Below are positions 3,043 to 63,140 of a DNA stretch of 64,000 nt, piece by piece. The position numbers and the translations under genes were made by a program. The notes under the pieces are model-generated. The model was not told where the DNA came from. It did no database searches and saw nothing but the letters and a program-made list of their open reading frames with translations. The DNA lies in the IMG/VR virus record IMGVR_UViG_3300032315_001715, positions 124,001-188,000 of that record; one strand, 5' to 3'. Numbering within the stretch: the stretch's first letter is position 1; every line of letters begins with the position of its first letter.

Positions 3043-3564
3043 TTGATGCGCATATCTGAGATACTAGAAACCGCCGGAGTTGGATTGGTTGTACCCGGTG
3101 TTAACATGCCGAAGGGCATGCACCCAGATGAGATCCGGAGACAGGCGGCTAAGTTTGGCAACCAAGTTAGCAAGGACGGAGTCCCTCCTATTGCCAGTAC
3201 CAATGGCGACGATGCCTTAGAGGAAATCACCGACGACGATGTGATCGAGGGCTGGAGCAAGAAATACAAAAACAGCATCAATTGCAGCAATCCAAAAGGT
3301 TTTAGCCAGCGTGCCCATTGTGCTGCACGTCGCAAGAGACAACGAGGTGAAGCAACCAGCAGCCGTAGCGTAAATGAAACCGCGGTTGATGAATCTAACA
3401 CGCTGGTTGAAAAAAAGAAAAAGCCCAAGCCTACCAATCCGGCACTGTGGAGCAGAGCTAAATCGGCCGCCCGAAGCAAGTTTGAGGTGTACCCGTCTGC
3501 CTATGCCAACGCATGGGCGTCTAAATGGTATAAGAATCACGGCGGTGGATGGAGAATGGGATGA
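3043..3564 (+). CDS. Basic modular protein, probable internal head protein
   Basis: N-terminal MRISEILE; modules SINCSNPKGFSQRAHC and YPSAYANAWASKWYK; TAAATA at 3022-3027. Confidence 0.6.
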   Translation: MMRISEILETAGVGLVVPGVNMPKGMHPDEIRRQAAKFGNQVSKDGVPPIASTNGDDALEEITDDDVIEGWSKKYKNSINCSNPKGFSQRAHCAARRKRQRGEATSSRSVNETAVDESNTLVEKKKKPKPTNPALWSRAKSAARSKFEVYPSAYANAWASKWYKNHGGGWRMG

Positions 3565-3857
3565 GGATTTCAGATATAGATCCGTTGTTCGAAGCATACC
3601 AAGGTGGATTGCGCAAGTGGTTTAAACAAAAATGGGTGAACATCGGCAAGAAGAAGGGCGGTAAACATCCTGAGTGCGGTACCAGTGGTGAGGACAAAGC
3701 TTATGCCAAATGCGTACCGGCCGCCAAAGCCGCATCGATGAGCAGCAAGGACAAAGCGTCAGCAGTTAGGCGAAAACGGGCCGCACAGTCTGCGGCTGGT
3801 AGGTCAGGCAAAGACAAGCCGGGAAGCGGTAAGAAACCAATAAGAGTTAGAACCTAA
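3561..3857 (+). CDS. Small Lys/Arg-rich protein, probable internal head protein (start moved to MRISDI)
   Basis: ATGA overlap with the previous stop; GGLRKWFKQKWVNI...CVP motif. Confidence 0.6.
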   Translation: MRISDIDPLFEAYQGGLRKWFKQKWVNIGKKKGGKHPECGTSGEDKAYAKCVPAAKAASMSSKDKASAVRRKRAAQSAAGRSGKDKPGSGKKPIRVRT

Positions 3858-4036
3858 TGAAGATACGAGATTTAATCGCCGAATCTGCATATGACGGATC
3901 AAACATCAGTGTCACTGGAACCGAAAAATCCATGTTACAACGTAAGTTAAACATACGCCCTGGTACTCCAGAATGGTTTAAGCTTTGGTTTTCTAGACCA
4001 TATCTAACCAATGAAAAACCGGTCGATGATAACTAA
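3857..4036 (+). CDS. 59-aa protein missed by the ORF track (MKIRDLIAE...RPGTPEWFKLWFSRPYL)
   Basis: TAATG overlap with the upstream gene; translated by hand to TAA at 4034-4036; CTS-like N-terminus. Confidence 0.7.
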   Translation: MKIRDLIAESAYDGSNISVTGTEKSMLQRKLNIRPGTPEWFKLWFSRPYLTNEKPVDDN

Positions 4037-4144
4037 ATCTTGGACTAATTTTTCAGCGATAACACCATTATCTTGCTAAATCATACCGCAATATAAACCC
4101 TCGTAAATTGACCCAATTAGCCACGTCCGATAATACTCATTTAC

Positions 4145-4735: not shown

Positions 4736-4743
4736 TCCGTTGA

Positions 4744-5430: not shown

Positions 5431-5451
5431 TTGTTGATTATACGATCCATT

Positions 5452-5973: not shown

Positions 5974-5977
5974 CGGA

Positions 5978-8470
5978 TTACCAAAGAATCTTCCACATTA
6001 TCGTTGCATTTGTCGACGGATTCGTTAAACGATTGATCTGATAACCTAGATTGGTAAAATACGTGATGATGGTATCCATCCTATCAATGTATGGTCTTGA
6101 CAGCTGATTGTTGCTGAGTTCCTGATTCTTCCACGCTTTAAAATAATCACGGCTATCTGGATATAGCCTAATACCAAATGTACCAACTCCGGCCCCAATT
6201 GATGCTGTTGCGGTTGATTGGATTCCGCCGGTGATTTGCGGCGGTGCAAGCGTTATGTTAGGTGTTGTTTCATATCCGTCACCGCCCGAAGTAACCGCAA
6301 TATTTGCAATGCTGTAGCCTCGCTGCGGTATCGTAACCGGAGGTACCGGAGTTCCGATTTGATACGGTCCTGGTATGAGATATACCGTTGGATCGGCTGT
6401 ATAGTTAACACCTTGATCAATTACCACGATACGATCTATGGTCGTTGCAGCCAGAACGGATACAGCAAGCGCGTCTCCGTCGATGGTCACCGCTGGAGGT
6501 ACATTGTAACCAGAACCGTTGGTCAACACTGAGATCGATTGTAATGTGGTCGATGCTAGCTCGCCGACAGCATCGGCGTCGATGCCGTCGCCAGCAATAG
6601 TGATGATCGGCAGATTGGTATAACCTGATCCAGGTGTTATCACGTCGATCGAAGTGATCTGGTCACCGACGATGTTTGCGGTTGCGGTGGCGTTTACCGA
6701 TGCACCGCCACCGGTTATGGTAACCGTGGCATAACTATAACCGGAACCCGTACTAATCATGTTTATCGAGAACAGTGAGGTCGGCGATAGAATTGCGGAC
6801 GCGGTTGCACCAGATCCGTTGGAAACGGTAACGTTTGGTATCGAGGTATAAAGGGTTCCCGGCACCAACACATCAAACGTCGATACATTACCGGATGATA
6901 GTACCGCACTAACCACCGCGGCTGTACCCCCCGTTAACGGCGGCTCAACTGCCACCACCGGCGGAACCGAATAACCCGACCCAGCCGTTAACACTCCGAC
7001 ATCGTTAACTCCCATAACAAGATTAAATGCAGCCAGTGTTCCGCTACCCCCGTTTACCGGATTTGATTCCAATCCCGGAAGGGCGGTATATGAACCGCCG
7101 GATTCCAGGGAATAGCTTTGTATTCTCCCTTGTGTATCAACCGCAGTAACACGTATGTAGGAATTTTCAGTTGCAACTCCGCCAGCTATCAACAGGTAGT
7201 CATCCTTGCTATAGTTGATACCGGATGATGTCATTTGTACAGAAACGACCTTCATTGATACCGTTCCCGCAGCGGCCCCTGATCCAACCGCTGTTATCGT
7301 CACCGATGGTACCGACACATAGTAATCATTCTCAACGATTTCTATAGAGTTGACGCTCGACGGGGTCATGCTAGCAATGGCAGTTGCACCATTACCGCTA
7401 TCAAAGGTCACCGAGGTTACTCCTACGTAACCATATCCGGTGTTGGTGATCAACACGGAGGTTACTGCTCCGCCGGTAACCATTGCTACCGCTTCGGCAC
7501 CGACACCGGATGGGTCCTGTATGACCACCCGCGGGGGTGCGGTGTAGCCGAGGCCCGCTGATGATATGGAAATTTCCTTGATACCCATTGTAAGATTAAC
7601 CGTAGCACCGGTGCCACCGCCGGGTAACACGGTTGTGGTTGCCCCGACTAGACCCGGTATGACCGTATAGTTACCAGGATTTGACAACACCAATGATTGT
7701 ATTTCACCGTTGGCATTAACACCTGATACCAGGGCCGTTGCAGCAACGCCAGTACCGCCTACTACCGTTATTATGTCGCCGAGATGATAGTCCATACCAG
7801 AGTTGTTAATGCTTATCCCAACCGCCGTGTATCTTACGGTATCGATGGTTGCACCAGATCCCTGGGCCACGATTTGTACCGTCGGTTGATCAGAATAACC
7901 TGCACCACCGGTGGTGTTTGCAATTGCAACAACGCTGCCCCATGATGCTAGGTATGCTCTCGCTGTTGCCGATACCGTTGGATTTCCACCGGATATGGTT
8001 ACCAACGGCGGTTGTATGTATCCGCTACCTTGTTCAGTAATGGTTATCGCTGTCAGACCCGACGTTACGTCAATCGGAACCGGACGGCCGGATAATGCAT
8101 CCGCATAGCTTGCGGCTAGCTTTATGTGATCAGGATCAACATATATCGCATAGTAATACGCATTGCTTTTTAGAGGTGCAGGAAGGGCTACCGTGCTCGA
8201 TAGGGTTATCGTATCTCCAGTTGAAAAATTATGATTCGGTATGTAAAGCTGATCAGTTAAAGGATCTATGGTCCATACCTGGTTGAACAACGCCGCACTG
8301 TTGGTCATCGGGGTATTGTTTGAAACCGTAGCTTCAAACAACCCCAGCTTAACGGCATCAAGTATTACTGATTCGATACCCCGTGCTTCGTCGTGTACGG
8401 CTCGATCTCGAAGAGGACTGTTCCTGGCTTCGTCGGCAGTGAGAAATACGCATGATCTAGACGTTGCCAT
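5978..8470 (-). CDS. Virion protein with many (I/V)TxxGSGYxxxPxVT repeats
   Basis: Many GSGY/GAGY/GLGY units between non-repetitive N- and C-termini. Confidence 0.65.
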   Translation of the reverse strand: MATSRSCVFLTADEARNSPLRDRAVHDEARGIESVILDAVKLGLFEATVSNNTPMTNSAALFNQVWTIDPLTDQLYIPNHNFSTGDTITLSSTVALPAPLKSNAYYYAIYVDPDHIKLAASYADALSGRPVPIDVTSGLTAITITEQGSGYIQPPLVTISGGNPTVSATARAYLASWGSVVAIANTTGGAGYSDQPTVQIVAQGSGATIDTVRYTAVGISINNSGMDYHLGDIITVVGGTGVAATALVSGVNANGEIQSLVLSNPGNYTVIPGLVGATTTVLPGGGTGATVNLTMGIKEISISSAGLGYTAPPRVVIQDPSGVGAEAVAMVTGGAVTSVLITNTGYGYVGVTSVTFDSGNGATAIASMTPSSVNSIEIVENDYYVSVPSVTITAVGSGAAAGTVSMKVVSVQMTSSGINYSKDDYLLIAGGVATENSYIRVTAVDTQGRIQSYSLESGGSYTALPGLESNPVNGGSGTLAAFNLVMGVNDVGVLTAGSGYSVPPVVAVEPPLTGGTAAVVSAVLSSGNVSTFDVLVPGTLYTSIPNVTVSNGSGATASAILSPTSLFSINMISTGSGYSYATVTITGGGASVNATATANIVGDQITSIDVITPGSGYTNLPIITIAGDGIDADAVGELASTTLQSISVLTNGSGYNVPPAVTIDGDALAVSVLAATTIDRIVVIDQGVNYTADPTVYLIPGPYQIGTPVPPVTIPQRGYSIANIAVTSGGDGYETTPNITLAPPQITGGIQSTATASIGAGVGTFGIRLYPDSRDYFKAWKNQELSNNQLSRPYIDRMDTIITYFTNLGYQINRLTNPSTNATIMWKILW

Positions 8471-8835
8471 TATATCTTGTCCCCTGCCTTAATAGCATTG
8501 GTAGCTACCTTTGCGGCTGTTTTTTCAACTTTTTCCTGATTTTTGGTCTTTTCATCCTTTGCAACCACTTCCGGTTCCTCTTTCTTAAGGATGATTTTCT
8601 CATTCGGAGGAATACCGTCGATCCGTTTGAAAACCTCGGAAAATCTTTCCGTTTGTAGGAGATCCTTGATCAGATTTGAATTGATCTGAAAATGCTGGCT
8701 GCGCAACATGGAAATAACGGTTGCCATGTCGAGCTCAGTTTTCTTATCCTGTAATGCTGTGATGATGAGATCCATTAGATCGATCGAAATCTCATCAGAC
8801 ACATCATCCTCAAATATGATCTCCTTGATCAACAC
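8470..8835 (-). CDS. Hypothetical, probable head-associated protein
   Basis: MLIKEIIFE N-terminus; operon position. Confidence 0.55.
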   Translation of the reverse strand: MLIKEIIFEDDVSDEISIDLMDLIITALQDKKTELDMATVISMLRSQHFQINSNLIKDLLQTERFSEVFKRIDGIPPNEKIILKKEEPEVVAKDEKTKNQEKVEKTAAKVATNAIKAGDKI

Positions 8836-11991: not shown

Positions 11992-12044
11992 GCAAGGCCA
12001 CTTGCTTGATGGTACTTATTTATACCAATCAAGAGAGATGTTAG

Positions 12045-13235: not shown

Positions 13236-13940
13236 TCACTCCGTTGGCGGATTTATTGTTTTCATTTTTTCGGCTGTGTTCTTGAGTAACATACCGATGC
13301 CAGTGGCCATTTCGATCTTGTCGTAAAGATCGTCGCTAACCTTTCCCTTGATATTTGCTACCTGGCTTTGCAATCCGACCATGATATCTCCCATGGTGGC
13401 AATCCTAGCAGCAGTGGCATTGTTCTTGAAGTCTCCAAGAAAATGCTTGTTGAACAAACCTGTAAACATATCAGCTTCTTCAATGATGTCCTCGGCAACT
13501 GGCGCTTGTTCTTCAGAAATGCTCGGATCAATGGTTGTTGGATTTGAAATACCAGCAAGTTGCATCATTCGATTGATGGGATTTAAGGGGGTCATGCCGC
13601 CCATCACCCCTTCGTCGATCTTGGTCAGCTTGTTTTCCCTGACCATCTTGGTCTTGCCATCATAAATGATACCGATGCAGGAATTTGGTCCCCTGGGTAT
13701 CGATATCTCGACCTCAGAGCCCTCGTAAATCACGATCTCACCCTTTTCCCAATCCTGCGAAACTGCTCCTTTGTTGGGCAAGTTCATCGCATGCTTGGCC
13801 TTGCGGCTCCATCTATCCTCAACAGAATTCCAAAGGGCGTCATCCCCGTCATTTTGTTCGACCATGATGTGTGGTGGTTTCACGATTGCCTCCTGATTAT
13901 TACCAGAAATATCTGCCATGTATTCGATTAGGGTTTTCAT
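13236..13940 (-). CDS. Hypothetical, probable head protein
   Basis: MKTLIEY N-terminus; RMMQLAGI motif. Confidence 0.6.
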   Translation of the reverse strand: MKTLIEYMADISGNNQEAIVKPPHIMVEQNDGDDALWNSVEDRWSRKAKHAMNLPNKGAVSQDWEKGEIVIYEGSEVEISIPRGPNSCIGIIYDGKTKMVRENKLTKIDEGVMGGMTPLNPINRMMQLAGISNPTTIDPSISEEQAPVAEDIIEEADMFTGLFNKHFLGDFKNNATAARIATMGDIMVGLQSQVANIKGKVSDDLYDKIEMATGIGMLLKNTAEKMKTINPPTE

Positions 13941-14095: not shown

Positions 14096-14135
14096 GACCT
14101 TGGCTCTTACTTGATGAGATATTTATTGCAAAGAC

Positions 14136-14814: not shown

Positions 14815-14874
14815 AGTTTATCTCCTTGTAAAGGTGCAATTTGCTTGCGTGATTATTTATGTCTGACGGTCCAT

Positions 14875-16686
14875 TTACTGGCGTTTAGACCTCTTCTTCT
14901 TGGTTTTCGTCGGTGCGGTCCCAGCTGGACCAAAGAAGCTCTGCCCAGCCGGCATGCGTCGTATTACTGGCATCATTGGGCCACCGAGGCCGCTTGCAAC
15001 GCTAGCAATGCTACCAGATGACGTTGATCCCGCAGAGGACATCTCCCGTAGATCAGCAGACTTTGCAAATCCGGGCTTTGGAGTAAACGGCGGCGACGAC
15101 GGATCATTTAGATTTTGCCACTTGTTATCACCAACCTTTTTCAGCCGAACATCCACGTCCTTGCCGGTCTTTGGATCCTTGATCGTTCTATTAACCACGG
15201 TACCGATGGGATCCGTTCCGCGATTAACCGCCGTTGACGTTTGATCCGATACCACTTTCTCCCAATAGGCAACAAATGCATCCTTGCCTTTTTCCTTGAA
15301 GATCTTCTCAGCAGCAGCATCAATATCCGCAACACCGCTTTTGAATGGAACCTCAGCAGCCGGTGACCCGGCGCCTAAATCGCTTGCTATGTCATTTTGA
15401 TCAACACCAACCTTGGTCAGCACACCTTTGATCAGATCGTCTGAAATGCCACCTCGGCGTAGTATCTTAACGATGTTTGCACTATCGATTGGTCGGCCAG
15501 CTGCATTCCACAGCTTTTCCAGCTTGTCAGCGGTAACCTTGGTGGTAATGTTTTTTCCAATCTGTGCTGCTTTAGCAGCAGCTTTACCTGCAAGACCTTT
15601 AAGCGCATCAAGCGGTCCTTCTGACATGGAAAAGATCTCAAGTACCTGGGATTCGCTAAGATTGCCTGGTTTGGTTCTATCAACCGATGTTGCAGCGGCT
15701 GTTGCTCCTTGCACACCGGCAACGATCTGTCCTATGACTTTTCTGGTATTAGCAATGTCATCTCTTGCCTGTGCATACAGAGTTTGATTGTTTATCAAGG
15801 CATCGTCGATGACCTTTTGTAGCTCCGCGTTGGTTAATATTTCCTTCAATCGAGCCAATCCATTTGCACCGCGATTGAAGTTACCGTTACGCATCTCTTC
15901 AACCGATGCGTTGAACAGCACGCGGACCCTGGTTTGTAGCTCGGCTGGAATGAAGGAATTGAATTCAAACATGGTAACACCGTTGACCACATATCTCATT
16001 TCAACCCGTCGCAGGGAAACATATCCTGGTATCTTCGCCACGTCTAGCGTTAGATTCGAGAACATCTCAGCAACACCTTTGGCACCGAGGCCGGCAATGT
16101 AACCTATCACCCCTGTCTTGGCACCCCGTCCGACGGCTGTTGATAGTTTTTCTCCCTTGAGCAGTTCAACCGAACCCCGTAGTATTTGACCGGCGATGGC
16201 GCCAGCACCCGGTCCGCCACTGACGCTGGCCACGGCTGTTAGCACACCAACGACGAACGCTGTTTTTCCGGGATTTTCCTTGGCAAACTTACCAAGCGCA
16301 TCAACGCTTTTGATAACAGCCGAATCCTCGCCAAGCTTGTCGGTGATGGTTGATTTTAGTTTCTCAAATTTTTGATCGAAAAATTTAACAGGTGCGGTAT
16401 CCTGCAGCCATTTTCCGGCGGTTGACAGCAATTCCTGCGCACGAGTACCGGCATCAACGGTTTTACCAGCAAGAGTTCGATTTTTTCCTAGATCAGTAAC
16501 GGTCCGTTCAACATCGGAAAACACGTCCTTGATCTGAGAAGGACTTAACGTGGCTTCAATTAGGGGTCTAAAATGATTATACAATCCCTCGATCACCAAC
16601 CGTTGATCGGGAGTGGTACCAACACATACCGTTTCTAACAGTGCTGCCTTTCTTGGATTTGATTCGATCAGATTTTGATATCTCAT
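14875..16686 (-). CDS. Hypothetical virion/internal protein
   Basis: 603 aa; MRYQNLIE N-terminus; hydrophobic AFVVGVLTAVASVSGG segment; basic C-terminal tail. Confidence 0.6.
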   Translation of the reverse strand: MRYQNLIESNPRKAALLETVCVGTTPDQRLVIEGLYNHFRPLIEATLSPSQIKDVFSDVERTVTDLGKNRTLAGKTVDAGTRAQELLSTAGKWLQDTAPVKFFDQKFEKLKSTITDKLGEDSAVIKSVDALGKFAKENPGKTAFVVGVLTAVASVSGGPGAGAIAGQILRGSVELLKGEKLSTAVGRGAKTGVIGYIAGLGAKGVAEMFSNLTLDVAKIPGYVSLRRVEMRYVVNGVTMFEFNSFIPAELQTRVRVLFNASVEEMRNGNFNRGANGLARLKEILTNAELQKVIDDALINNQTLYAQARDDIANTRKVIGQIVAGVQGATAAATSVDRTKPGNLSESQVLEIFSMSEGPLDALKGLAGKAAAKAAQIGKNITTKVTADKLEKLWNAAGRPIDSANIVKILRRGGISDDLIKGVLTKVGVDQNDIASDLGAGSPAAEVPFKSGVADIDAAAEKIFKEKGKDAFVAYWEKVVSDQTSTAVNRGTDPIGTVVNRTIKDPKTGKDVDVRLKKVGDNKWQNLNDPSSPPFTPKPGFAKSADLREMSSAGSTSSGSIASVASGLGGPMMPVIRRMPAGQSFFGPAGTAPTKTKKKRSKRQ

Positions 16687-17348
16687 GGGGTTGTTCCTTT
16701 GAGCTTGGCTAGCTCTTGTTTGATTTTATCGATCACGGTCTGGTCAAGCTTGCTAGCAGCAGGTTGGGGCTGCGTCGCCTCTGGTGATCTTGCTAGCTGT
16801 TGCTCTGGTTCATCGTCGGGCATTTCTTGTGATCGATCGCTACGTTCTAGCCATTTAATCGCACCCAGTTCTAGGAGATAGGTTACGGCAATTTCAGCAC
16901 GTTTTGCTGAATCCGTATCATCTGGTCCCCCGATCAGCTGCGAACTTTTAGACCAGGTCTGTTTCATCACATCGGTAGATATCCGCTGACTTGGTGCGGA
17001 TCCGCCGACTTGCTTGCTTGTTTGCTTGGAAATGAGATCAAGTATTTTTGATTGAACCGTTTGGTCCTTGAATATCTTGGTAATCTCGGTACCGGTTAAC
17101 CCGAGCTGATCAGGCATGGAAAGATACTTGTATAGAGTGTTCCATGTTACCGTGTCCCATTTTTGGCCATTACGGCCCATGTGCTGGGTGAAGTTTTTCT
17201 TAGCGTCAAGCAATACCTTTGAAACCTCAGCTTTTCCTCGATGACGCGCACTGACCACGCCGGCTAGGGCATTTCCAACCAATCCAACATAATCTTTCAG
17301 GCCTTCTTTAACCGACCCAGGATCCTCGCTAATTTGCCCGATTTTCAT
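16683..17348 (-). CDS. Hypothetical protein
   Basis: 221 aa; MKIGQISE N-terminus; ATGA overlaps. Confidence 0.6.
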   Translation of the reverse strand: MKIGQISEDPGSVKEGLKDYVGLVGNALAGVVSARHRGKAEVSKVLLDAKKNFTQHMGRNGQKWDTVTWNTLYKYLSMPDQLGLTGTEITKIFKDQTVQSKILDLISKQTSKQVGGSAPSQRISTDVMKQTWSKSSQLIGGPDDTDSAKRAEIAVTYLLELGAIKWLERSDRSQEMPDDEPEQQLARSPEATQPQPAASKLDQTVIDKIKQELAKLKGTTP

Positions 17349-17590
17349 TCAGATTTCCTCAATTCTTTGATCTTTCTCATAAATTTTCGATCATCCTCAC
17401 TGAGAATGCTTCGATGCAATCGTTTTACCAAGTCATCTGCAACATCACTTGGATAGCTTTCTCGTATTAATCTAGCAAGATTAACAGCTGATGCTATTAT
17501 ATGGGTAGCTCGACTTTCGATGATGGTATGCTTGCTCTTTGCCGGAACAATCGTGTCAAGCTCGTCGATGATGTTTTTTAATAAGTCCAT
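17345..17590 (-). CDS. Small hypothetical protein
   Basis: 81 aa; TAAATA at 17616-17621. Confidence 0.6.
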   Translation of the reverse strand: MDLLKNIIDELDTIVPAKSKHTIIESRATHIIASAVNLARLIRESYPSDVADDLVKRLHRSILSEDDRKFMRKIKELRKSE

Positions 17591-17676
17591 GATTAAATTC
17601 CGCGCGTTGGTTAAATATTTATCCTAAAGTTGCTCGTCGCATAAATAGTTCAAACGATCGTATCTGGAGATTACTG

Positions 17677-18471
17677 ATGAAACAACCGTTAGCAGAGGAC
17701 ATCCGAAGCATTCTTAATAAATTAGACGAGTATATCACCTCCGTGCAGGAAGATGACCGTGTTGATACCGACGAAACATTGGATGAACAAGGTGAGACTA
17801 GCAACCCAAAAAATCCAAAGGGCGATGATGCTGCAAATGAACCGGTGGACAAAATGCTCACCAAGCCAGCTGATCTAGAAAAGATCGTCGGAAACATCAA
17901 TGTCCAGTCATTGATCACCATGTTAGAGATTCCAGAAGACCATGTTGCCAATTTCAAGAGCGCAATAAACGCTCTCAGGCATGACGAGCCACGCCTCTCT
18001 CAAGCACAGGCCATGGCACTTGCCATCGCATTCAATCACATGATGACCCTCGGTTCTACCGAAAAGACCAAAATAGCGACCACAATCCGACCGGTCACGG
18101 GTGTTATCGAAAATTTGGATGATAATAAGCTCAAGTCTTACATTGCCAAGGATCAGTCGTCAGCTTCATCCCCCGATACCATTTCCCAAATGAAATCCAT
18201 GATCGATGCCGTGAAAAATCACGGCACTCCGACCGAGAAAAAAGAAATCGGTCTAAACGAAAACAGCGTTGAGATCATCGGCTATAACAGCGGACACGGC
18301 GAAAAGCTAGACGTGGTAGCACAGGATCCAAAGCGACGACGCAAGGTTGAAATGATCCAGCTACGACTGGGCGATCGCGGACAGCCAGAATTGGTATTCA
18401 AGGATACCGACGGAGACAAATACGTCGCCGATTGGAATACAAAATACGGATGGGTTGCAGATTTTGACTAA
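17677..18471 (+). CDS. Hypothetical, probable head protein
   Basis: TAAATA at 17642-17647, SD GGAG, acidic. Confidence 0.6.
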   Translation: MKQPLAEDIRSILNKLDEYITSVQEDDRVDTDETLDEQGETSNPKNPKGDDAANEPVDKMLTKPADLEKIVGNINVQSLITMLEIPEDHVANFKSAINALRHDEPRLSQAQAMALAIAFNHMMTLGSTEKTKIATTIRPVTGVIENLDDNKLKSYIAKDQSSASSPDTISQMKSMIDAVKNHGTPTEKKEIGLNENSVEIIGYNSGHGEKLDVVAQDPKRRRKVEMIQLRLGDRGQPELVFKDTDGDKYVADWNTKYGWVADFD

Positions 18472-38918: not shown

Positions 38919-39710
38919 TCACTTTTTCTCCATTGGCTTTAGCACCTGCTCGGCCTTGCCGGTCTTCGGGTCCTTGAAGAACTTGACCTGCGGGATAGCG
39001 TCATCAGACATGGTGCCTGTATTGTTCAACCACTTGCTGTCAACCGGGGTAGAATCATCTCCCTTGGTGATTGGCATTGGTGCACCCTTGATGTGGGTAT
39101 TGAAATTTGTGGTATCCTGACGTGGCTCACCCGGCGCGATGTCCTCCATCTGTATCCAACTAAACAACGGAGCTGGCGGATCAACTTCCATCGTTGGACG
39201 AGAATCTGCAACTCCTGCTAGATATGTCAGCAGCTTGTTGTTGTATTCATTGCCAAACAAGTCGTCGGTCTTTGGTTGCTCAGCATCAGTATATTCGCGA
39301 TCGGTGCTGAGACGTGCTGCTGATATTTCGTTCTTTTTATCCGCCTCCGCATTTGCCTTGCGTTCCCAGGCATCAAACTGAGAATACATCTCAATTGGTT
39401 CGTTTTGGCTTCGAACAACCATCATCTTTTCACTGACGTTTGCAGCATCCTTGAGATCCTGCAATAAAATGTATTGGCTTATCGGTACTCCGAGAACAAC
39501 CTTCATTGAATGCACATTGCGATTTTGTACGTCTATGAAATCCTTGTGATTATCGTCAACCACAACCGGCGCTATCAGTTCCTTGAGATCGTATTTTTTT
39601 AGCCACGATTCGATGGTCCCAACCTGTTCGTCAGCAGGCTTGGTTGCAAACTTGATAAAATAAACGTAGGACTTGGCGCTTTCTGCGAGATAATCCCTGA
39701 AATTCTTCAT
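38919..39710 (-). CDS. Hypothetical head protein with T4-like capsid-targeting N-terminus
   Basis: MKNFRDYLAE versus T4 IPIII MKTYQEFIAE; TAAATA at 39733-39738. Confidence 0.6.
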   Translation of the reverse strand: MKNFRDYLAESAKSYVYFIKFATKPADEQVGTIESWLKKYDLKELIAPVVVDDNHKDFIDVQNRNVHSMKVVLGVPISQYILLQDLKDAANVSEKMMVVRSQNEPIEMYSQFDAWERKANAEADKKNEISAARLSTDREYTDAEQPKTDDLFGNEYNNKLLTYLAGVADSRPTMEVDPPAPLFSWIQMEDIAPGEPRQDTTNFNTHIKGAPMPITKGDDSTPVDSKWLNNTGTMSDDAIPQVKFFKDPKTGKAEQVLKPMEKK

Positions 39711-43363: not shown

Positions 43364-43417
43364 GGTATTAACCTCCGTGTGTATGTTGTAAGTTATTTAT
43401 TCCAGGAGGTGTTTTTA

Positions 43418-46152: not shown

Positions 46153-47011
46153 CTGGATCAAATACACATGGCAAACATATAAGGTTACCGGGCAGATCCC
46201 ATACATTATTTCAATTTGGTTGCCTTTTCATCTTCTTTTAGTAGCTGGTATTGTTTTAGCCATCACAGCGTGGTCGTGGACTTATCTGGTGTATTTTGTA
46301 ATCGGATGGACCATTTTTGGTGGTCTCGGCACGGCAGTGATGCTGCATCGCCACGTGTCCCATCGTTCGATCGTCGTTAGAACCTGGATGAAACCAGGCT
46401 TATATTGGATCGGATGCTTGGCTGCACAGGGATCACCAATTTGGTGGGCCGCGTTGCATCGAGGCTACCATCACGCACATTCTGATAAAGACAAGGACAT
46501 ACACAGCCCAATCAATGGGTTCTGGCATGCATACATGGGCTGGATGTTTGGAATCAAACACGATTCAGTTAACCTCAAATACGGAGTCGAGCTGCTGAGA
46601 GATAAGCAGTTAATATGGTTCCATAAGAACTACAACATGGTGGTATGGGGATCAATTGTCGTGATGGCACTGATAGACCCTATGTTTTGTCTGTGGTTTT
46701 ATATCATACCAGCTATGGTTGGTTTACATACTGATAGCCTTGTAAACAGCGTGTGTCACACCATGGGTGCCGGATATCGACCGTTCGACACCAAGGATCG
46801 TAGCCAAAATGTTTGGTATCTCGGATATCTAGGCTGGGGCCAAGGTTGGCACAATAATCATCATTCTGATCCAAGAAGCTATGACTTTGGTACCACCGTT
46901 AGCAAAAAATGGTGGGAATTTGATCCGTGCATGTTATGGGTTCCAATCATATCGCCCTGGGCAGAAACTAAGAAAATTTGGGCACAATGGAGGAATTCAT
47001 GCGCTGGATAG
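46145..47011 (+). CDS. Membrane fatty-acid (delta-9-type) desaturase
   Basis: His boxes HRHVSH, HRGYHH, HNNHH; transmembrane segments; HSD.DKD.HSP. Confidence 0.9.
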   Translation: MINWIKYTWQTYKVTGQIPYIISIWLPFHLLLVAGIVLAITAWSWTYLVYFVIGWTIFGGLGTAVMLHRHVSHRSIVVRTWMKPGLYWIGCLAAQGSPIWWAALHRGYHHAHSDKDKDIHSPINGFWHAYMGWMFGIKHDSVNLKYGVELLRDKQLIWFHKNYNMVVWGSIVVMALIDPMFCLWFYIIPAMVGLHTDSLVNSVCHTMGAGYRPFDTKDRSQNVWYLGYLGWGQGWHNNHHSDPRSYDFGTTVSKKWWEFDPCMLWVPIISPWAETKKIWAQWRNSCAG

Positions 47012-47628
47012 CAATAGGAGCTACCGTTGAAAACGTTGTAATTGCTGCACACGACGAAATAACACTGCTAGAAACCATAGCCGAGCATGATTTCGACGTC
47101 ATCGTAAAGATATATGGATTGTCTGATGGTGAGTATAACGAAATCAAATCAGGCAACTATGAGTATCGAATTCGATTCAATAATCTAAGAAGCGTTTATC
47201 TTGAACGCATTGGTCGCAGCGAGGAAACCAAACAGCTATCTAGAATTTATACCAAACGAATACAACAAATGGTTGCAATGCGGGGTCGATACGAACATGC
47301 GTTCAACAAACACCGAGCGTTGCTGAGCCAGCAGTATGAAATTTATGAATCCAAGGCCATGGAAGCCAAGGACATCATCAACAACCAGAATAGCGCATTT
47401 TTTCTCGATGGGTATGTTAAGGATTATGCCGAGGAAGCCAACATGGATGTGTTGGCAGCAGCAACACTGATCTGGGCCAAATACACCAACTGGCACGAAT
47501 ATCTTCGAAAGATCGAGCGACTTCGCCTGCGGCATTTCAATGCACTCAAGACCGCCAAGACTGATGAGGATTTCCTTGCGCTTGCTGCCCAGGTCGACAA
47601 AGACTTCTTTATTAACATGCTGATGTAA
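46999..47628 (+). CDS. Hypothetical protein with a tail-fibre-assembly-like helical C-terminus
   Basis: QQYEIY..K..EA...A.....A..I..K...W.....IE..R pattern; SD GGAGG sets the start at 46999. Confidence 0.4.
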   Translation: MRWIAIGATVENVVIAAHDEITLLETIAEHDFDVIVKIYGLSDGEYNEIKSGNYEYRIRFNNLRSVYLERIGRSEETKQLSRIYTKRIQQMVAMRGRYEHAFNKHRALLSQQYEIYESKAMEAKDIINNQNSAFFLDGYVKDYAEEANMDVLAAATLIWAKYTNWHEYLRKIERLRLRHFNALKTAKTDEDFLALAAQVDKDFFINMLM

Positions 47629-47638
47629 AGGAACGGCC

Positions 47639-48718
47639 ATGGAATTAGTTTATTACACCCCTAACAAGCTGTATTCTTATCAAGATATTCGAAGGATTGA
47701 TCCGATGCAGGTGTCGTTTTCACAGATGTTTAATCCAAGCATCAGCTTGATGGATCGAACAGGATCAATTAATTGTCCACCTGTGTCGGTTAAGATCCTA
47801 GATAGTTTCCCGGAATGGACATCGCCGCCAAGCTTCGAGGAACTATGTTACTCGAGGTATGATTCGATATTGCAGCAAGCATTATCCTCCAACAAGACCG
47901 TGGTGATCTTCTATTCCGGTGGGATCGACAGCACGCTGATAGCGGCATTAGCAATCGCACATCCGGATTTCCATCGCCATCGAAATAATCTGCTGTTGGC
48001 GTTTAGCGAGGAAAGCATCAAAGAAAATCCAAAATTTTGGTATGACCGATTGTTGCCAGCGTTTGGGCATCGGATCATAAATTCAAACGGATATCATACG
48101 CATATATCTGACCCAAACAATGTATGCATCACCGGTGAATTTGCTGACAACATTTTTGGTAGCCTAACGGTTAAAAGCTACATGGATGTTAGTGGCGACT
48201 TTGATGCTATACAAAAGCCTTTTGCAGATACTGGAAGATTTTGGCTCTTAAAGAAAATCACCAGTCCTGCTGATCGAGATCGATGTGGTGATATGATGGA
48301 CAAGATCTTCGCAACCAGTCCCAGACCAATGGTGTCAAATCATGATTGCCTGTGGTGGTTGAATTTTGTGCTAAAGTGGCAAGCTGTTAAATTCAGGCTA
48401 GCTAGCCATGCACCTACACCCGATATGGTTGATCTCATGGCTAAAAATGTGGTCCATTTTTTTGAAACCAAGGAGTTTCAAAACTGGGCGGTGATGACCG
48501 ATGAACCAAAGGTTGAAAAGGATTGGTACAGCTATAAGCTGCCAGCAAAGAAGCTAATACATTCAATCAATGGCGACGATTATTATCTACGCTGGAAGAC
48601 CAAGTATCCTAGCATACCCGGATTGACCAGGTATGCTAATACACACGATTTCATATATTGGGACGAACCCAATGATCGATATGTTGCATCAAAGGATTAT
48701 CTATTACCTCTGAAGTGA
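47639..48718 (+). CDS. Second PP-loop asparagine-synthetase-like protein, without glutaminase domain
   Basis: VIFYSGGIDST and ITGEFADNIFG (AsnB-like SGEGADELFG). Confidence 0.75.
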   Translation: MELVYYTPNKLYSYQDIRRIDPMQVSFSQMFNPSISLMDRTGSINCPPVSVKILDSFPEWTSPPSFEELCYSRYDSILQQALSSNKTVVIFYSGGIDSTLIAALAIAHPDFHRHRNNLLLAFSEESIKENPKFWYDRLLPAFGHRIINSNGYHTHISDPNNVCITGEFADNIFGSLTVKSYMDVSGDFDAIQKPFADTGRFWLLKKITSPADRDRCGDMMDKIFATSPRPMVSNHDCLWWLNFVLKWQAVKFRLASHAPTPDMVDLMAKNVVHFFETKEFQNWAVMTDEPKVEKDWYSYKLPAKKLIHSINGDDYYLRWKTKYPSIPGLTRYANTHDFIYWDEPNDRYVASKDYLLPLK

Positions 48719-49446
48719 TCGTAAAGGCCGGTTCGATTTAAAAAGTCATCTGAGAACACGCCGTCGATCCTTAGGCTCCAATTGGCAAACTGGCAGGGTT
48801 CTGAACCGTGCCAGTTTGCGTTATCAAAATATATCACCCGAGAATCGGTATAGTGTTTGGTACCGTCGTTATCTAACACGAAGAATCGCTTGAGGGAGTT
48901 CAAGGTTAACCATATGAATTCGTTTCGATGGCTTCGAGGATTGGGATAATCCCGATGTGTTACGGTTTTAACGCCCGGTTCGTTGATGAACATCACCACA
49001 CGACCGTATTCGTTAAATACATTTTGGGAATCAATCCATTCAAATAGAAATTTGAAATCATTGGTAACGGGGGTATCAATGCAACTATCGTGCAGATGTT
49101 TCGTGCTGTAATGGTCCTGTTTCATCACACGGATATACATCGCTTGGTTCAAGCTAACCACCGGATGCATGTATTTGCAATAGGTGTAAAATCTACCAAG
49201 GCTTCCCAGCTTCGTGGCAATCTGTCTTGCATCTGAGGTTGGATCCCCTACCAAACCTTTTGCAAAGTCACCAAGCTCAATTTGTGTTTGATCATATAGA
49301 TTTGCTTGCACACCAACCAAACTGGTATAAATTTGTTCAGGATATTTGGCAATGGCATATGCAAACGCAGATTGGTGCTGTTCAAGCGCAGAAATATCTA
49401 TGTGGGTTGATAGATCAACCCACGGTTGATCGTTGACAAGATGCAT
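48697..49446 (-). CDS. Putative 2OG-Fe(II) oxygenase
   Basis: THRD ... NWHG ... SLRIDG; start moved to MHLV by SD GGAGAG. Confidence 0.6.
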   Translation of the reverse strand: MHLVNDQPWVDLSTHIDISALEQHQSAFAYAIAKYPEQIYTSLVGVQANLYDQTQIELGDFAKGLVGDPTSDARQIATKLGSLGRFYTYCKYMHPVVSLNQAMYIRVMKQDHYSTKHLHDSCIDTPVTNDFKFLFEWIDSQNVFNEYGRVVMFINEPGVKTVTHRDYPNPRSHRNEFIWLTLNSLKRFFVLDNDGTKHYTDSRVIYFDNANWHGSEPCQFANWSLRIDGVFSDDFLNRTGLYDHFRGNR

Positions 49447-49529
49447 GTTACTCTCCGAAATTGATGTTGACTTTTGGCATGTCTGCCTACATCGTTTATA
49501 ATTAAATACATACAGATAAGTCAAACCAG

Positions 49530-50555
49530 ATGTCATTAATCATTGATCCACGTAGTTATCATCAACAAGAAGACCACACACAATGGCCTTCTAGATTCCC
49601 AGCATGGTTGACTACAACGCAGGATTTATCCCCCGGAAGCTATGTGGTTCCTGATCACGATCACTCGATAGTCATGTTGGGAGGAGAACAACCTCGATGC
49701 ATGGCCAACGTCTGTACTCACAAACGATCCGTCATTCTCAAGGGAAGGGGACAGATCGGATCGGTGATGACCTGCCCGATACATAAATGGACATGGAGCT
49801 TAACCGGAAAGCTACGCGGCGCTAGGGGTTTTGAAAAAAGCTGCGAAATGGATCTCGAGGAACACCCGATACACACATGGCAAAGCCATATTTTTGGCGG
49901 AAATCAAAGCTGGCAAGAGGACATTGGATCTCTTGGCGATCTTGCCAAATGGTTGGATATACAGGACTATCAGTGGCATAGCGGATCAAGATTAAGCTAC
50001 GCATTTGATTGGAAGATTTTCATGGAAATCTTCCTAGATCTCTACCATGTTGCACCGTATCATCCTGGACTTCGAAGCTTAACCGATTGCAACACATTTG
50101 ATTGGATATTTGGCAAGCATTGGAGCTGTCAAACCGCTAAGTTTAACAGGGATTGGCCAAATGAGCTTGGTTATAGGGAGTTGTATAAGCTTTATCAGAA
50201 ATCAGGTCACTACGATTCGGCGATATATGGTGCGGTATGGTTGGGAATCTATCCAAACATCATGATCGAATACTATCCGGGATCAATCGTTGTTAGTACG
50301 GTATGGCCTGACGGACAAGGTAAGTGCGTTAACCATCTTGATTTTTATTATGAAACGTGGTTGTTGGAAAAATTTCCAGAGTTTCCTGCGGTATTCCAAA
50401 ATACGTTCATGACAACCGCCGACGAGGATGAAGAAATCGGGCTTAGGATGCAAGAAGGGTTATCATTGACCAAGACCCCATTTAAATCAATGAACCACAA
50501 GATTGAGGAAGCTGGGTATCAGCATTTCCATCAATGGTTACAAACGTATCTTTAG
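49530..50555 (+). CDS. Rieske non-heme iron oxygenase alpha subunit (choline monooxygenase/CntA-like)
   Basis: NVCTHK...CPIHKW Rieske ligands; WKIFMEIFLDLYHV..YH mononuclear iron motif; TAAATA at 49503-49508. Confidence 0.88.
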   Translation: MSLIIDPRSYHQQEDHTQWPSRFPAWLTTTQDLSPGSYVVPDHDHSIVMLGGEQPRCMANVCTHKRSVILKGRGQIGSVMTCPIHKWTWSLTGKLRGARGFEKSCEMDLEEHPIHTWQSHIFGGNQSWQEDIGSLGDLAKWLDIQDYQWHSGSRLSYAFDWKIFMEIFLDLYHVAPYHPGLRSLTDCNTFDWIFGKHWSCQTAKFNRDWPNELGYRELYKLYQKSGHYDSAIYGAVWLGIYPNIMIEYYPGSIVVSTVWPDGQGKCVNHLDFYYETWLLEKFPEFPAVFQNTFMTTADEDEEIGLRMQEGLSLTKTPFKSMNHKIEEAGYQHFHQWLQTYL

Positions 50556-58051: not shown

Positions 58052-58109
58052 GTTATTCTCCTATCAATTTTCAAAGAATAACACGGATCATTATATCGGT
58101 CAACCGGAT

Positions 58110-58862: not shown

Positions 58863-58926
58863 GATAAGCCCCTTTCCGTTATTTATTGGGCTCGATAAAT
58901 AACAGACAACTAAAAAGGAGCCGCCC

Positions 58927-60045: not shown

Positions 60046-60057
60046 AAGGAAACCATC

Positions 60058-60681
60058 ATGTCTTTTGTTTTCGATTTCACACCAGAAAAGCTATCCAAGT
60101 GCATCAACAATCCAAATGCCGAGAAATGGTTTGCTGCGTTATATGAAATATTACCGACCTATCAAATCAACACCAAGCTGCGAGTAGCAGGTTGGCTTAG
60201 CCAGACAGGACATGAGAGTGGAGATTTCCGTGCCGTGCAAGAGAATCTCAACTATGGTGCCAAGGGATTACGGGCGACATTTCCCAAGTATTTTCCAACT
60301 GACGACCTTGCCGCAACGTATCAACGCCAGCCAGAAAAGATCGCCAACAAGGTATATGGTGGCCGCATGGGCAACGGTCCAGAAAGCAGCGGAGACGGAT
60401 GGAAATTCCGCGGTAGAGGACTGATACAGGTTACCGGAAAGGAAAACTATCTACGTTGTTCACAAGCATTATATGGTACTGACATGCTCATGCAGACTCC
60501 CGAGCTGTTGCAGGACATTGATGGAGCCGTGCGGTCAGCCTGCTGGTACTGGAATAGCCGAAACATCAACGTTGACGCTGATCGATCTGATGTGATGGCA
60601 ATGACCAAGAAGATCAACGGCGGCACCCACGGCCTTGATGATCGCCAGCGTCGATATGCCATCTGCATGCAAGTTCTGTAA
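60058..60681 (+). CDS. GH19 chitinase-like endolysin
   Basis: QTGHES...ENLNY...GDGWKFRGRGLIQVTGKENY...INGG..GL.DR. Confidence 0.9.
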   Translation: MSFVFDFTPEKLSKCINNPNAEKWFAALYEILPTYQINTKLRVAGWLSQTGHESGDFRAVQENLNYGAKGLRATFPKYFPTDDLAATYQRQPEKIANKVYGGRMGNGPESSGDGWKFRGRGLIQVTGKENYLRCSQALYGTDMLMQTPELLQDIDGAVRSACWYWNSRNINVDADRSDVMAMTKKINGGTHGLDDRQRRYAICMQVL

Positions 60682-60726
60682 AATTTTACAGAAACTCCGT
60701 CGCTAATAGGTTCGGTAAATACCAGC

Positions 60727-62382
60727 ATGCAATATTGGTATTCAGCGCAGCTACGGCAGTATCGACTTCAGTTTATCCGGGCATTCAGCGGGTTTAACGT
60801 TAAGACCGGCAGAAACGGTCCAAACAACACCGAGGAACTCATCAAGGTTCCCTGTCGGTACGGCGATCCATCAAGGATCGCCGCATCGATAGTCAAGGGT
60901 AACAGTGAAAACAAGGTACTATCAGTACCATTCATTACCTGTTTTATCAGCTCGTTGAACATGAACGCATCTCGGCGGCAAGATCCACAGTTAGTACAAA
61001 AGGTGCAGGTAAACGAGCGCCTATATGACGAAGAACTAGGCCGATACACCAACGAGATAGGCAATCGCTATACTGTGGAGCGGCACATGCCAGTCCCGTA
61101 TGACGTCACCATGCAGGTCGACATATGGACCAACAATCTCGACATCAAGGAGCAGCTACTAGAGCAGATAATCGTTCTTTATAACCCGGCCATTGACATA
61201 CAGACCTCCGTAAATCCACTTGATTGGACGGTTCTCAGCTATATTGAAATGCAGGACAACATCACATGGACCAGCCGATCGATCCCAGTTGGTACCGAAA
61301 ATCCAATTGATGTGGCAACTTTTATGTTCAAGGTTCCGATATGGATCAACCCTCCGGCCAAGGTCAAGAAGCAATCCTTGATACATCAAATCGTTACCAA
61401 CATAGTGCAGGGAGAGAAAAATCCCAGGGCAATGGAATGGACCGAATACGAGTTTTTCTCAAGAACCATAACCACACCGGGCGATGCAACCATCAAGGTC
61501 CATCCAAACTTGGATGGCACTTATCGAGTGTTGTTGTGTGATAGCTCTGGATCGACCGTTGACAAGGAAAGGTTGCCAACGGTAACATTTTCGATGGATT
61601 CTCCGCAGTTCACCTCAGGACTGAGTTTTAAATGGAATGATCACACATGCATCATCACCAGCAGTGACATCAATCAAGTTGTCAAGGATATCCGCACGGC
61701 AATAATCGGTAGCGATCTGAACTGTGTCATTTACAACGACACCTCTTTGCAGTTTATCAACACGGTAGGTGGTGATAATACCTTTGCGGACATCGCTCCG
61801 GGCAGCCTTGCTGCACTGGGATTGCAAGCCGTTACCTATCCAGGAGGTAACTTAGCTTGGTGGAGATTGCTGACCTTGTACGGCAGCATCAAACCATACA
61901 GCAGTTATGGATCAAACGCTAGCCAGATACGCCTAAAGACCATTGAAGACATAGATCAAACCAACACCGATGTCGTTGGATGGATAGATATAGATACGGT
62001 TGATCAAAATCAAATCATATGGACACCGGACTCTGAAACATACCCAACACCGACATTGCCTGCCGTTAGTGCCATTGTTGACCCACACACCAGCGGGCCA
62101 AACATAAACCTACCAGAAGCCGCCATTGGCCAACGATATCTGTTAACCGAGGATGCATCAGAAAGCAGCGTTGCGTGGGGTGCAATGACCAGCAAGGCCA
62201 ACGATATCGTGGAATTTAACGGATCAAACTGGCAAGTGTCGTGGAATGCCGGAGATAACGCCAGTGCATTGGAGTACGTGTTAAACACGAGATCCAATCG
62301 AACATACAGATGGCTTAATGGTTATTGGACCACTGTCATCGAGCCAAAGTATCTGCAAGGGTACTGGAGGATCAGCATGTGA
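60727..62382 (+). CDS. gp15: Tail sheath stabiliser/terminator (gp15-like) with C-terminal extension
   Basis: QY.Y..QLRQY.LQF, VP.RYGD, MPVPYD, IWT.N...K.QLLEQI..L.NP. Confidence 0.75.
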   Translation: MQYWYSAQLRQYRLQFIRAFSGFNVKTGRNGPNNTEELIKVPCRYGDPSRIAASIVKGNSENKVLSVPFITCFISSLNMNASRRQDPQLVQKVQVNERLYDEELGRYTNEIGNRYTVERHMPVPYDVTMQVDIWTNNLDIKEQLLEQIIVLYNPAIDIQTSVNPLDWTVLSYIEMQDNITWTSRSIPVGTENPIDVATFMFKVPIWINPPAKVKKQSLIHQIVTNIVQGEKNPRAMEWTEYEFFSRTITTPGDATIKVHPNLDGTYRVLLCDSSGSTVDKERLPTVTFSMDSPQFTSGLSFKWNDHTCIITSSDINQVVKDIRTAIIGSDLNCVIYNDTSLQFINTVGGDNTFADIAPGSLAALGLQAVTYPGGNLAWWRLLTLYGSIKPYSSYGSNASQIRLKTIEDIDQTNTDVVGWIDIDTVDQNQIIWTPDSETYPTPTLPAVSAIVDPHTSGPNINLPEAAIGQRYLLTEDASESSVAWGAMTSKANDIVEFNGSNWQVSWNAGDNASALEYVLNTRSNRTYRWLNGYWTTVIEPKYLQGYWRISM

Positions 62383-63140
62383 TGCAGACATCCCTGTTTG
62401 AAATCAAAGGATCAATAGATGCCGAGTCGTTCGGCGCGATCTTCACACCAAATATCAAAAAAGTCATTAGGGTGGTAAGAAAGTACGGATTTGATATTCG
62501 CGTGATCGGAGGGGCCGTTAGGGACTTTCTTCGCGGCAAAATGCCAAGAGATGTGGATTTTGCGACCAATGCCGAGCCGGCTGAACTGATGTTCATTTTT
62601 GATCTCGAGGGCATCGAACATGACGATTGGGGCATTGCACACGGTACCATCAAGGCTGTTTTTGGTGATGAGGTGATTGATGTGACGTCAATCACGTATA
62701 AGCTGCGAATTTCCGGTGATCGTATCAAGATAGATCGCAAGGCATCCTGGGAAACTGATGCTGCACGCAGGGATCTAACCATCAACGCAATGAGCGTTGA
62801 TATGTACGGTAATTTATATGATTATCGAAACGGCCAAAAGGATTTAGCCGAACAATTGGTTAAATTCAATCCCGATGCGCAGGACAAGATCGACCAGGAC
62901 CCATATACCATATTGCGATGGTTCAAGGCACTGGATTTGTTTGACGATCCAAAGTGGTTGAAAAAAGACAAGATGATCATCATGTCAAATGCCAGCAAGG
63001 TTTCGCGGGTTAAAAAAGAAAAACGCACGAGCAAGCTGCTAGCGTCACTGAAGCAGTCCAAAAAATGGCCAAAAATTCTCAAGCTCATGTGCGATACCGG
63101 GGTTGCAAAACAACTTGATCTAACTTGCACCGATGAATAA
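62382..63140 (+). CDS. Second class II nucleotidyltransferase (CCA/poly(A) polymerase family) with degenerate motifs D and E
   Basis: GGAVRD..DVD and RRDLTINA intact; QDPYT replaces EDxxR; TGATG overlap sets the start. Confidence 0.8.
   Translation: MQTSLFEIKGSIDAESFGAIFTPNIKKVIRVVRKYGFDIRVIGGAVRDFLRGKMPRDVDFATNAEPAELMFIFDLEGIEHDDWGIAHGTIKAVFGDEVIDVTSITYKLRISGDRIKIDRKASWETDAARRDLTINAMSVDMYGNLYDYRNGQKDLAEQLVKFNPDAQDKIDQDPYTILRWFKALDLFDDPKWLKKDKMIIMSNASKVSRVKKEKRTSKLLASLKQSKKWPKILKLMCDTGVAKQLDLTCTDE

Follow-up and report, generated by a model that had tools for sequence, protein, structure and literature searches.

The window analyzed here is a 64-kb stretch of DNA, bases 124001-188000 of the single 452,799-bp viral record IMGVR_UViG_3300032315_001715, and its gene content, as scanned with PHROG and Pfam, is that of a T4-type myovirus. 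About ten otherwise unrelated genes of this jumbo phage encode proteins that begin with a short T4-like peptide, which is well above the number expected by chance. The capsid targeting sequence (CTS) of phage T4 is the classic peptide for loading proteins into a phage head, and is the basis of the T4 protein-delivery vectors. We consider it likely that a subset of the late genes of this phage encodes unrelated proteins carrying a head-targeting tag equivalent to the T4 CTS. By analogy with T4, the tag probably sends its cargo into the head.

Pairwise comparison of all N-termini encoded by the genome brought together a group consisting of MRI(S/F)EILE, MRFQHILE, MRYQNLIE, MKINEIISE, and MKIRDLIAE. 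The eight-residue (8-mer) pattern M[RK]xxx[LI]xE was observed at 8 N-termini, whereas 0.7 to 0.8 were expected from its internal rate and from column shuffles, and when the hydrophobic and polar positions were also fixed, 7 N-termini were observed against 0.1 expected. A unified pattern of 8 to 10 residues, M[KR](x)Φx[EDQNH]ΦΦ(x)E, where Φ is hydrophobic, fitted 10 N-termini, with 0.21 expected. The tag bearers of this genome share no similarity in BLASTP. The peptide MRI(S/F)EILE occurs three times in the genome, at gene 3046 of the window and at two other genes (MRISEILE/MRIFEILE), and because the three copies differ in synonymous codons, selection appears to have acted on the peptide and not on a DNA repeat.

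An earlier note on the window had proposed a family of ten unrelated proteins with a shared CTS-like N-terminus. All ten peptides exist at the positions it gave, on the plus strand (3046, 3561, 3857, 17677, and 62382) and on the minus strand (8835, 13940, 16686, 17348, and 39710, each named by the first base of its start codon). Each start is credible, with a Shine-Dalgarno-like sequence or a start/stop overlap, and alternative upstream starts exist at TTG 3043 (for 3046), ATG 3549 (for 3561), and TTG 62325 (for 62382). The N-terminus was found to be shared by half of the list: 3046, 3857, 16686, 17348, and 39710 fit the unified tag, whereas the other five do not. That the proteins are unrelated was borne out by the lack of any BLASTP match among the ten at E<0.01, except that 62382 is a paralog of the tRNA nucleotidyltransferase at 1829-2968. 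What did not stand was (I/L)xE near the N-terminus as the family criterion, which is barely above background. Genome-wide, [LI]xE with Glu at residues 5-12 is present in 67 of 562 gene calls (11.9%), compared with about 7.7% of internal windows, and it is present in 19 of the 68 window genes, among them the gp41-like helicase and the gp32-like single-stranded DNA-binding protein (SSB). We rejected this loose motif as a classifier because it matches the helicase and the SSB and because its association with virions in the relative Atu_ph07 (below) is seen at Glu8 only. Motif enrichment, which the earlier note had suggested as a check, is 1.5-fold for the loose form, whereas the strict tag lies 10- to 70-fold above expectation. 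The T4 sequence cited was correct: IPII and IPIII start with MKTYQEFIAE in NC_000866, and IPI starts with MKTFKEF in the same record. Taken together, the phenomenon noticed earlier is real but had been defined too loosely, and is partly confirmed, about half of the list being the tag family. The window members with strong support are genes 3046, 3857, 16686, and 39710, and possible variants are genes 8835, 13940, 17590, 17677, and 3561 (coordinates in Table 1).

When 50 kb of window sequence was compared by megablast with a phage collection, there were zero matches and hence no near-identical phage, and relatives were therefore sought by protein similarity. The nearest cultured relatives at the protein level are Agrobacterium phage Atu_ph07 and Sinorhizobium phage Phosso (470-490 kb), followed by the RaK2-type phages, and the window is syntenic with bases about 25-108 kb of Atu_ph07. 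Because the tag patterns had been shaped post hoc, the 8-mer was tested in the independent genome of Atu_ph07. Genes of Atu_ph07 were called with the same script as those of our phage, and its 131 virion proteins (PMC6102473, Table S5) were mapped onto the gene calls by molecular weight, with a difference of no more than 0.01 kDa for most entries. The pattern M[RK]xxx[LI]xE is present in 17 Atu_ph07 genes, against 0.95 expected from the internal rate and about 2 from column shuffles. Sixteen of these 17 genes encode virion proteins, while the background is 131 of 719 (Fisher p≈1e-11). When [LI]xE was examined position by position, Glu8 alone was associated with virions (17 of 131 virion proteins versus 4 of 588 non-virion proteins), and Glu at the other positions was at background. 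The 17 tag bearers fall into 7 BLAST families, 6 of which are found in virions. These data support the packaging of such tagged proteins in virions.

The phage encodes the machinery that such a tag would use. One head module, located elsewhere in the genome (200-208 kb), comprises the prohead protease, a coiled-coil scaffold, a Gp23 capsid protein, and the portal. The protease (genome 202757-203404) belongs to the gp21 family (Peptidase S77; PF03420, 90 bits), and the capsid protein (genome 200317-201519) matches Pfam Gp23 with 323 bits. The N-terminus of the protease is MRNQNLLIE, with Glu at residue 9 and T as the next residue, that of the scaffold is MEKEIKDLLE, with Glu at residue 10, and in the capsid protein I-L-F-E, with NATPG directly after it, precedes the start of the Pfam Gp23 model by about 11 residues. 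Because all three carry [LI]xE, an [L/I]-x-E specificity is plausible for the protease of this phage.

The tagged genes appear to be late genes. The heptamer ATAAATA is present in 100 copies in the genome and lies within 45 nucleotides (nt) upstream of 47 gene starts, where about 2.4 would be expected, and the genes that it precedes include those of the tail tube and the portal. Judged from this distribution, ATAAATA probably acts as the core of the late promoter. The TAAATA core is directly upstream of 7 of 12 tagged genes and of 66 of 550 others (p=2e-4), and the remaining tagged genes are mostly inside late operons. The spacing from ATAAATA to the start codon falls into two classes, one of 22-37 nt with a Shine-Dalgarno sequence and one of 4-8 nt before the ATG; the latter spacing suggests leaderless or near-leaderless late mRNAs.

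Table 1. Tagged and candidate genes and late-promoter-like motifs (window coordinates unless marked genome; aa, amino acids; pI, isoelectric point)
Feature	Position	Strand	Remark
Late-promoter-like GTAAATA	3021..3027	+	18 nt upstream of the 3046 start
172-aa basic protein, pI 9.7, MRISEILE then T	3046..3564	+	strong 8-mer tag
98-aa very basic protein, pI 10.4, MRISDIDPLFE	3561..3857	+	weak candidate
59-aa protein, MKIRDLIAE then S	3857..4036	+	strong by sequence
121-aa acidic protein, GTG start, (M)LIKEIIFE	8470..8835	-	plausible variant
ATAAATA	12017-12023		further copy in the minus-strand late operon
234-aa acidic protein, MKTLIEYMAD	13236..13940	-	plausible variant, T4-type 10-mer with Asp10
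ATAAATA	14120-14126		further copy in the minus-strand late operon
ATAAATA	14854-14860	-	further copy in the minus-strand late operon
603-aa protein, MRYQNLIE then S	14875..16686	-	strong 8-mer tag
221-aa protein, MKIGQISE	16683..17348	-	fits the 8-mer; doubtful
81-aa protein, MDLLKNIIDE	17345..17590	-	missed by the earlier note; PHROG virion structural protein
ATAAATA	17616..17622	-	heads the minus-strand late operon with 17590, 17348, 16686, 13940, and 8835
ATAAATA	17641-17647	+
264-aa acidic protein, MKQPLAE	17677..18471	+	weak to moderate
263-aa protein, MKNFRDYLAE then S	38919..39710	-	closest match to the T4 tag; strong
ATAAATA	39733-39739	-	upstream of 39710
ATAAATA	43394-43400	-
252-aa tRNA nucleotidyltransferase paralog, MQTSLFE	62382..63140	+	PHROG 2244, Pfam PolyA_pol
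Tagged genes outside the window	genome 22465, 82955, 198421, 304410, 338877

Gene 39710 belongs to a family of conserved virion proteins of Atu_ph07 and RaK2-type jumbo phages. Its members are 19-27% identical overall, and the N-terminus is their best-conserved stretch; some members were found by seeding the search with the tag, while the homologs starting with MKTLQDYLTES and MKDLNTILTES were found unseeded. The Atu_ph07 homolog, gp113, is abundant in virions, where it was detected with 11 peptides and 61.7% coverage. The deposited coding sequence of gp113 (MF403008, 84393-85148; L019:4001-4756) begins 29 codons downstream of the conserved MKTLQDYLTES, so the T4-like tag of this protein has been hidden, and a late-promoter-like motif lies upstream of the conserved start. 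In an AlphaFold model of the 39710 protein, with an overall predicted local distance difference test (pLDDT) score of 56, the tag is a short helix and only residues ~15-100 fold. A Foldseek search of BFVD with this low-confidence model returned uncharacterized phage proteins, together with a weak match to the T-even Ip7 (template modeling score 0.46 by target, E 2e-3). Tblastn with the N-terminal domain found jumbo-phage homologs only, and a Protein Atlas look-up of the protein gave only unnamed viral clusters. The size of the gene and its position near a gp4 homolog would have fitted the T4 gp2 DNA-end protector, an assignment that was rejected because hhalign showed no profile similarity (probability 0.3).

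Three small genes with overlapping stops and starts (3046, 3561, and 3857) are headed by the GTAAATA at 3021-3027. Orthologs of 3046 start with MRISDILE and MRLFELIGE. The C-terminal domain of 3046, or modules of it, is found in more than 590 viral contigs, and several contigs with this type of domain have M-x-x-x-[DQ]-[LI]-[LF]-E-N starts of their own, for example MKLVDILEN. The 3561 protein has a tag-like beginning without Glu8, LFE being at residues 9-11. Its module is fused to a 3046-type module in other phages, and no ortholog of 3561 was recovered for a test of conservation. The MKIRDLIAE of 3857 corresponds residue for residue to T4 MK(T)YQEFIAE, apart from one missing residue.

The 603-aa protein encoded by 16686 has a tag that resembles the N-terminus of the protease (MRNQNLLIE-T) and that is kept in its 68% ortholog as (V)RYQSLIES. 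The protein contains Gly-rich hydrophobic segments, and its residues 541-579 resemble the presumed maturation site and the N-arm of the capsid protein (19 of 40 residues identical, E 1e-4). The capsid protein and the 603-aa protein are the only two proteins of the genome with this N-arm motif. In the alignment, the C-terminal region, residues 541-603, with DLRE-MSSAGSTSSGS...PMMPVIRRMP stands against ILFE-NATPGSTSAGN...VILPVIRRVMP of the capsid protein, with the L-R-E site included. The N-arm module is PHROG 17311, and it is also present on a small open reading frame of Erwinia phage Hallingskeid.

The 603-aa gene and the neighboring 221-aa gene occupy, without sequence similarity, the locus of the tagged virion array gp53-gp63 of Atu_ph07. 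This helicase-adjacent locus contains non-homologous tagged genes in our phage, in metagenomic relatives, and in Atu_ph07, and it appears to be a variable cargo locus at which the tag alone is kept, like the T4 internal-protein loci. In one IMG/VR relative, whose neighboring genes are 51% identical, an extra gene of 64 aa starting with MRIMEILCE (L130:4970-5164) lies between the 603-aa ortholog and the gp50 homolog, which shows that small tagged genes are gained and lost at this locus.

The 8835 protein has no K/R at position 2, and [IL]xE at residues 7-9 is kept in its orthologs (VLIREIITE and VLIKELLKE); the gene lies between two virion structural genes (PHROG virion proteins, homolog of Atu_ph07 gp44). 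Orthologs of 13940 start with MKRLIEYINE, which has Glu10, and with MKTSHDYLRSLSE; in T4, Asp10 blocks processing and still allows targeting (PMC9026906). Gene 17590, the first after the late promoter at 17616-17622, keeps I-x-E at residues 8-10 in its orthologs. The 7-mer of 17677, whose late promoter is at 17641-17647, is outside the unified tag, and [LI]-[AS]-E-D is kept in four orthologs; in Atu_ph07, proteins with the Glu at position 7 were in virions no more often than the background. Gene 62382 was rejected as a chance match, being a paralog of the CCA-adding enzyme with the loose motif only, and the mapping of the Atu_ph07 virion proteome did not include its homolog.

Among the tagged genes outside the window, that at genome 198421-199287 lies beside the capsid gene and head module and encodes a DUF5591 protein. 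The gene at genome 338877-339425 (L139) encodes a homolog of Fe/Mn superoxide dismutase (SOD) with both Pfam SOD domains, which starts with MRFQHILE. In this protein the Pfam domain is preceded by an extension of 12 residues that constitutes the tag, and as head cargo the SOD homolog would be an unusual enzyme-like candidate. In Atu_ph07, the tagged virion protein gp381 (290373-290885; L036:10373-10885), starting with MKWQDLSE, has a sub-threshold match to the Pfam ADP-ribosyltransferase family ART-PolyVal (E 4e-4, 21.7 bits against a cut-off of 31.2). This match recalls T4 Alt and may be taken as a lead only. Several of the tagged proteins are small and very basic (pI 9.7, 10.4, and 11.9). 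One further gene that fits the 8-mer, genome 268391 (MRFKLLLE), was excluded, since its start was probably mis-called upstream of a signal-peptide-like Met.

We then considered how the tagged proteins would be handled if they behave as T4 internal proteins do. The tag of a newly made protein would dock onto the scaffolding core during prohead assembly, the gp21-type protease would cut after the Glu of the terminal [L/I]-x-E, and the mature protein, remaining inside the head alongside the DNA, would belong to an inner body or exit when the DNA does. It is from this analogy that we infer core binding, cleavage, head location, and injection for the tagged proteins. In its most extended form, which we put forward tentatively and regard as rather unlikely to hold in full, the tag would serve as an address label for all head-internal proteins of Atu_ph07-type phages, those of the inner body and those ejected alike. 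Enzymes and small basic DNA-binding proteins would then enter the host together with the DNA, and the C-terminal copy of the maturation site and N-arm would either anchor the 603-aa protein to the capsid lattice or have it processed along with that lattice.

Several points weigh against a T4-like head-targeting tag. The gene set consists of 562 calls from a home-made caller, and the tag patterns were refined after inspection of the data. The proteome support is that of the relative Atu_ph07, and that proteome says 'virion' and neither 'head' nor 'cleaved'. It was obtained from particles purified with polyethylene glycol and includes likely contaminants, namely a RecA-like protein, an SSB, and ribonucleotide reductase. 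In addition, 11 of the 17 Atu_ph07 tag bearers are paralogs, comprising the gp53-gp63 array and two further ones. Phosso, Hallingskeid, and Vibrio phage 2.275.O, which have the same protease, show no expansion of the tag, with 1-2 matches each to the unified pattern; with the 8-mer alone, 6 matches were observed in 2.275.O against 0.6 expected. Within single families, the 30% orthologs of the 603-aa protein are without the tag, a 65%-identical ortholog of 17348 starts with MKIKHITKQ and has lost the tag Glu, and Ser or Asp replaces Glu10 in the Phosso and Hallingskeid homologs of 39710. As to the fate of the cargo, an inner body of the RaK2 type is as good a destination as injection. The Atu_ph07 paper (PMC6102473) makes no mention of cleavage, proheads, or internal proteins, and among the papers that a literature search listed, none surfaced that linked the 'capsid targeting sequence' to any of the RaK2-type phage names used.

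The strongest alternative, to which we give somewhat less than an even chance, concerns the role of the cargo. Here the tag also directs proteins to the head, and the cargo is structural, forming an inner body or core that organizes the long genome, rather than a set of injected anti-defense or takeover effectors. The RaK2-type phages phAPEC6 and 121Q have a capsid inner body of 91 × 18 nm (PMC7247149). The 39710 family is clade-wide and annotated as virion structural, whereas T4 internal proteins are hypervariable, and the small, very basic tagged proteins are what DNA-packing proteins would look like. However, the helicase-adjacent locus is hypervariable among relatives, as arms-race cargo would be, and some tagged proteins are enzyme-like (the SOD homolog, the DUF5591 protein, and gp381 with its sub-threshold ADP-ribosyltransferase match). 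Moreover, the two roles do not exclude each other, for phiKZ inner-body proteins are also ejected.

We think it improbable that the tag marks incorporation into the virion by a route other than that of T4, through the tail, whiskers, fibers, or an assembly chaperone, and is left uncut by the protease. Atu_ph07 and the RaK2-type phages do have elaborate whiskers and many unplaced virion proteins (PMC6102473, PMC7247149), and the Atu_ph07 proteome resolves 'virion-associated' only. Against this, the tag ends in the [LI]xE of the protease at a fixed distance from Met1, with Glu8 alone associated with virions, and it resembles both the N-terminus of the protease itself and the T4 tag. Furthermore, one tagged gene (genome 198421-199287) adjoins the head module, and a copy of the capsid maturation site is found in the 603-aa protein.

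Chance, N-terminal composition (Lys/Arg2 and A/T-rich early codons), or a signal at the mRNA level in late, partly leaderless transcripts would agree with the mere 1.5-fold enrichment of the loose [LI]xE, its occurrence in replication proteins, the lack of association in Atu_ph07 outside position 8, and the several late genes with a promoter 4-8 nt before the ATG, and is a probable explanation of 62382, a possible one of 17348, and a partial one of 3561 and 17677, but as an account of the strict tag we find it very hard to credit, because that tag lies 10- to 70-fold above the internal-sequence and column-shuffle expectations, its copies differ in synonymous codons, and it predicts presence in the virion in an independent genome.

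Beyond the tagged genes, the window contains a replication and recombination set (gp41-like helicase, gp61-like primase, UvsX, and gp32-like SSB) and a packaging and tail set (large terminase, tail tube, a 1344-aa tail sheath, and a gp15-like sheath stabilizer), as assigned by PHROG and Pfam. Scans of the window for tRNAs and with Rfam gave no matches. The two paralogs of the CCA-adding-type tRNA nucleotidyltransferase, at 1829-2968 (+) and 62382-63140 (+), are 60 kb apart and 36% identical, and the second copy is without the C-terminal part. The helicase at 27058-29607 (-) has 849 aa, ~340 aa more than its 506-aa Atu_ph07 homolog; its residues ~120-520 match PHROG families annotated as terminase, primase, or helicase loader, and the protein may contain an insertion, either a domain or an element. 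A run of genes at 43974-50555 (+), flanked by those for the tail tube and the tail sheath, has a lower G+C (0.43-0.44) and no BLASTP homologs in Atu_ph07, and looks like an inserted island.

If the tag is a head-targeting signal, a shorter equivalent of the T4 CTS would be present on many more proteins in T4-like phages of 450-490 kb, and the likely head cargo of uncultured giant phages could be read from their sequence. The tagged proteins would also be candidates for components of the RaK2-type inner body. Our phage is in the same broad clade as the RaK2-type phages, with which it has the 39710-type virion protein in common, and the inner body of those phages is a radiation-sensitive protein rod inside the DNA. 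In contrast, the unified tag is not expanded in Hallingskeid, the one RaK2-type genome tested. No sequence relationship is known between the inner-body proteins of phiKZ and proteins of RaK2-type phages (PMC7247149).

In phiKZ and SPN3US, many head-internal and ejection proteins are cut after Glu by a T4-related protease, and paralog arrays with identical N-termini are found (PMC5694885). Our phage and its relative are alike in the many head-internal proteins that the tag would mark, the gp21-related protease, the predicted processing after Glu, and the paralog arrays. The phiKZ/SPN3US motif, however, is (S/A/G)-x-E at the end of propeptides that mostly exceed 100 residues, whereas here 8-10 residues end in [L/I]-x-E; because tag length and motif differ, the tagged proteins were not classed with the processed proteins of phiKZ and SPN3US.

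The closest comparison is with T4. The first ten residues of the T4 CTS suffice for targeting, residues 4 and 7 being important for targeting and residues 8 and 10 for processing, and gp21 itself has LIE with Glu at residue 9 (PMC9026906). The MKNFRDYLAE of 39710 matches MKTYQEFIAE in kind at all ten positions, with F4, Y7, L8, and E10 standing for Y4, F7, I8, and E10, and the 8-mers keep Φ3, Φ6, Φ7, and E8, dropping one more residue before the Glu than the 9-mer of 3857 does. The tags here are mostly 8- and 9-mers (M[KR]ΦxEΦΦE), whereas those of T4 are 10- to 19-mers, and T4 has three internal proteins against about ten tagged genes here and at least 17 in Atu_ph07. The mature parts of the tagged proteins have no PHROG or Pfam match to T4 internal proteins, and conservation of some of the tagged proteins extends over the clade, whereas T4 internal proteins are hypervariable. 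Like T4 Alt, gp24, gp67/68, gp22, and gp21, the protease and scaffold of our phage have [LI]xE near the N-terminus; unlike the gp21 substrates, the tagged proteins have no homologs among these T4 proteins, with the exception of the protease, the scaffold, and the capsid protein. What is shared with the T4 CTS is the Lys at position 2, the hydrophobic or aromatic residues at the targeting positions, the [I/L]-x-E end, and bearers that are unrelated to one another, and what is shared with the T4 internal proteins is a gp21-family protease, genes that would be expressed late, and a variable cargo locus that appears to keep only the tag.

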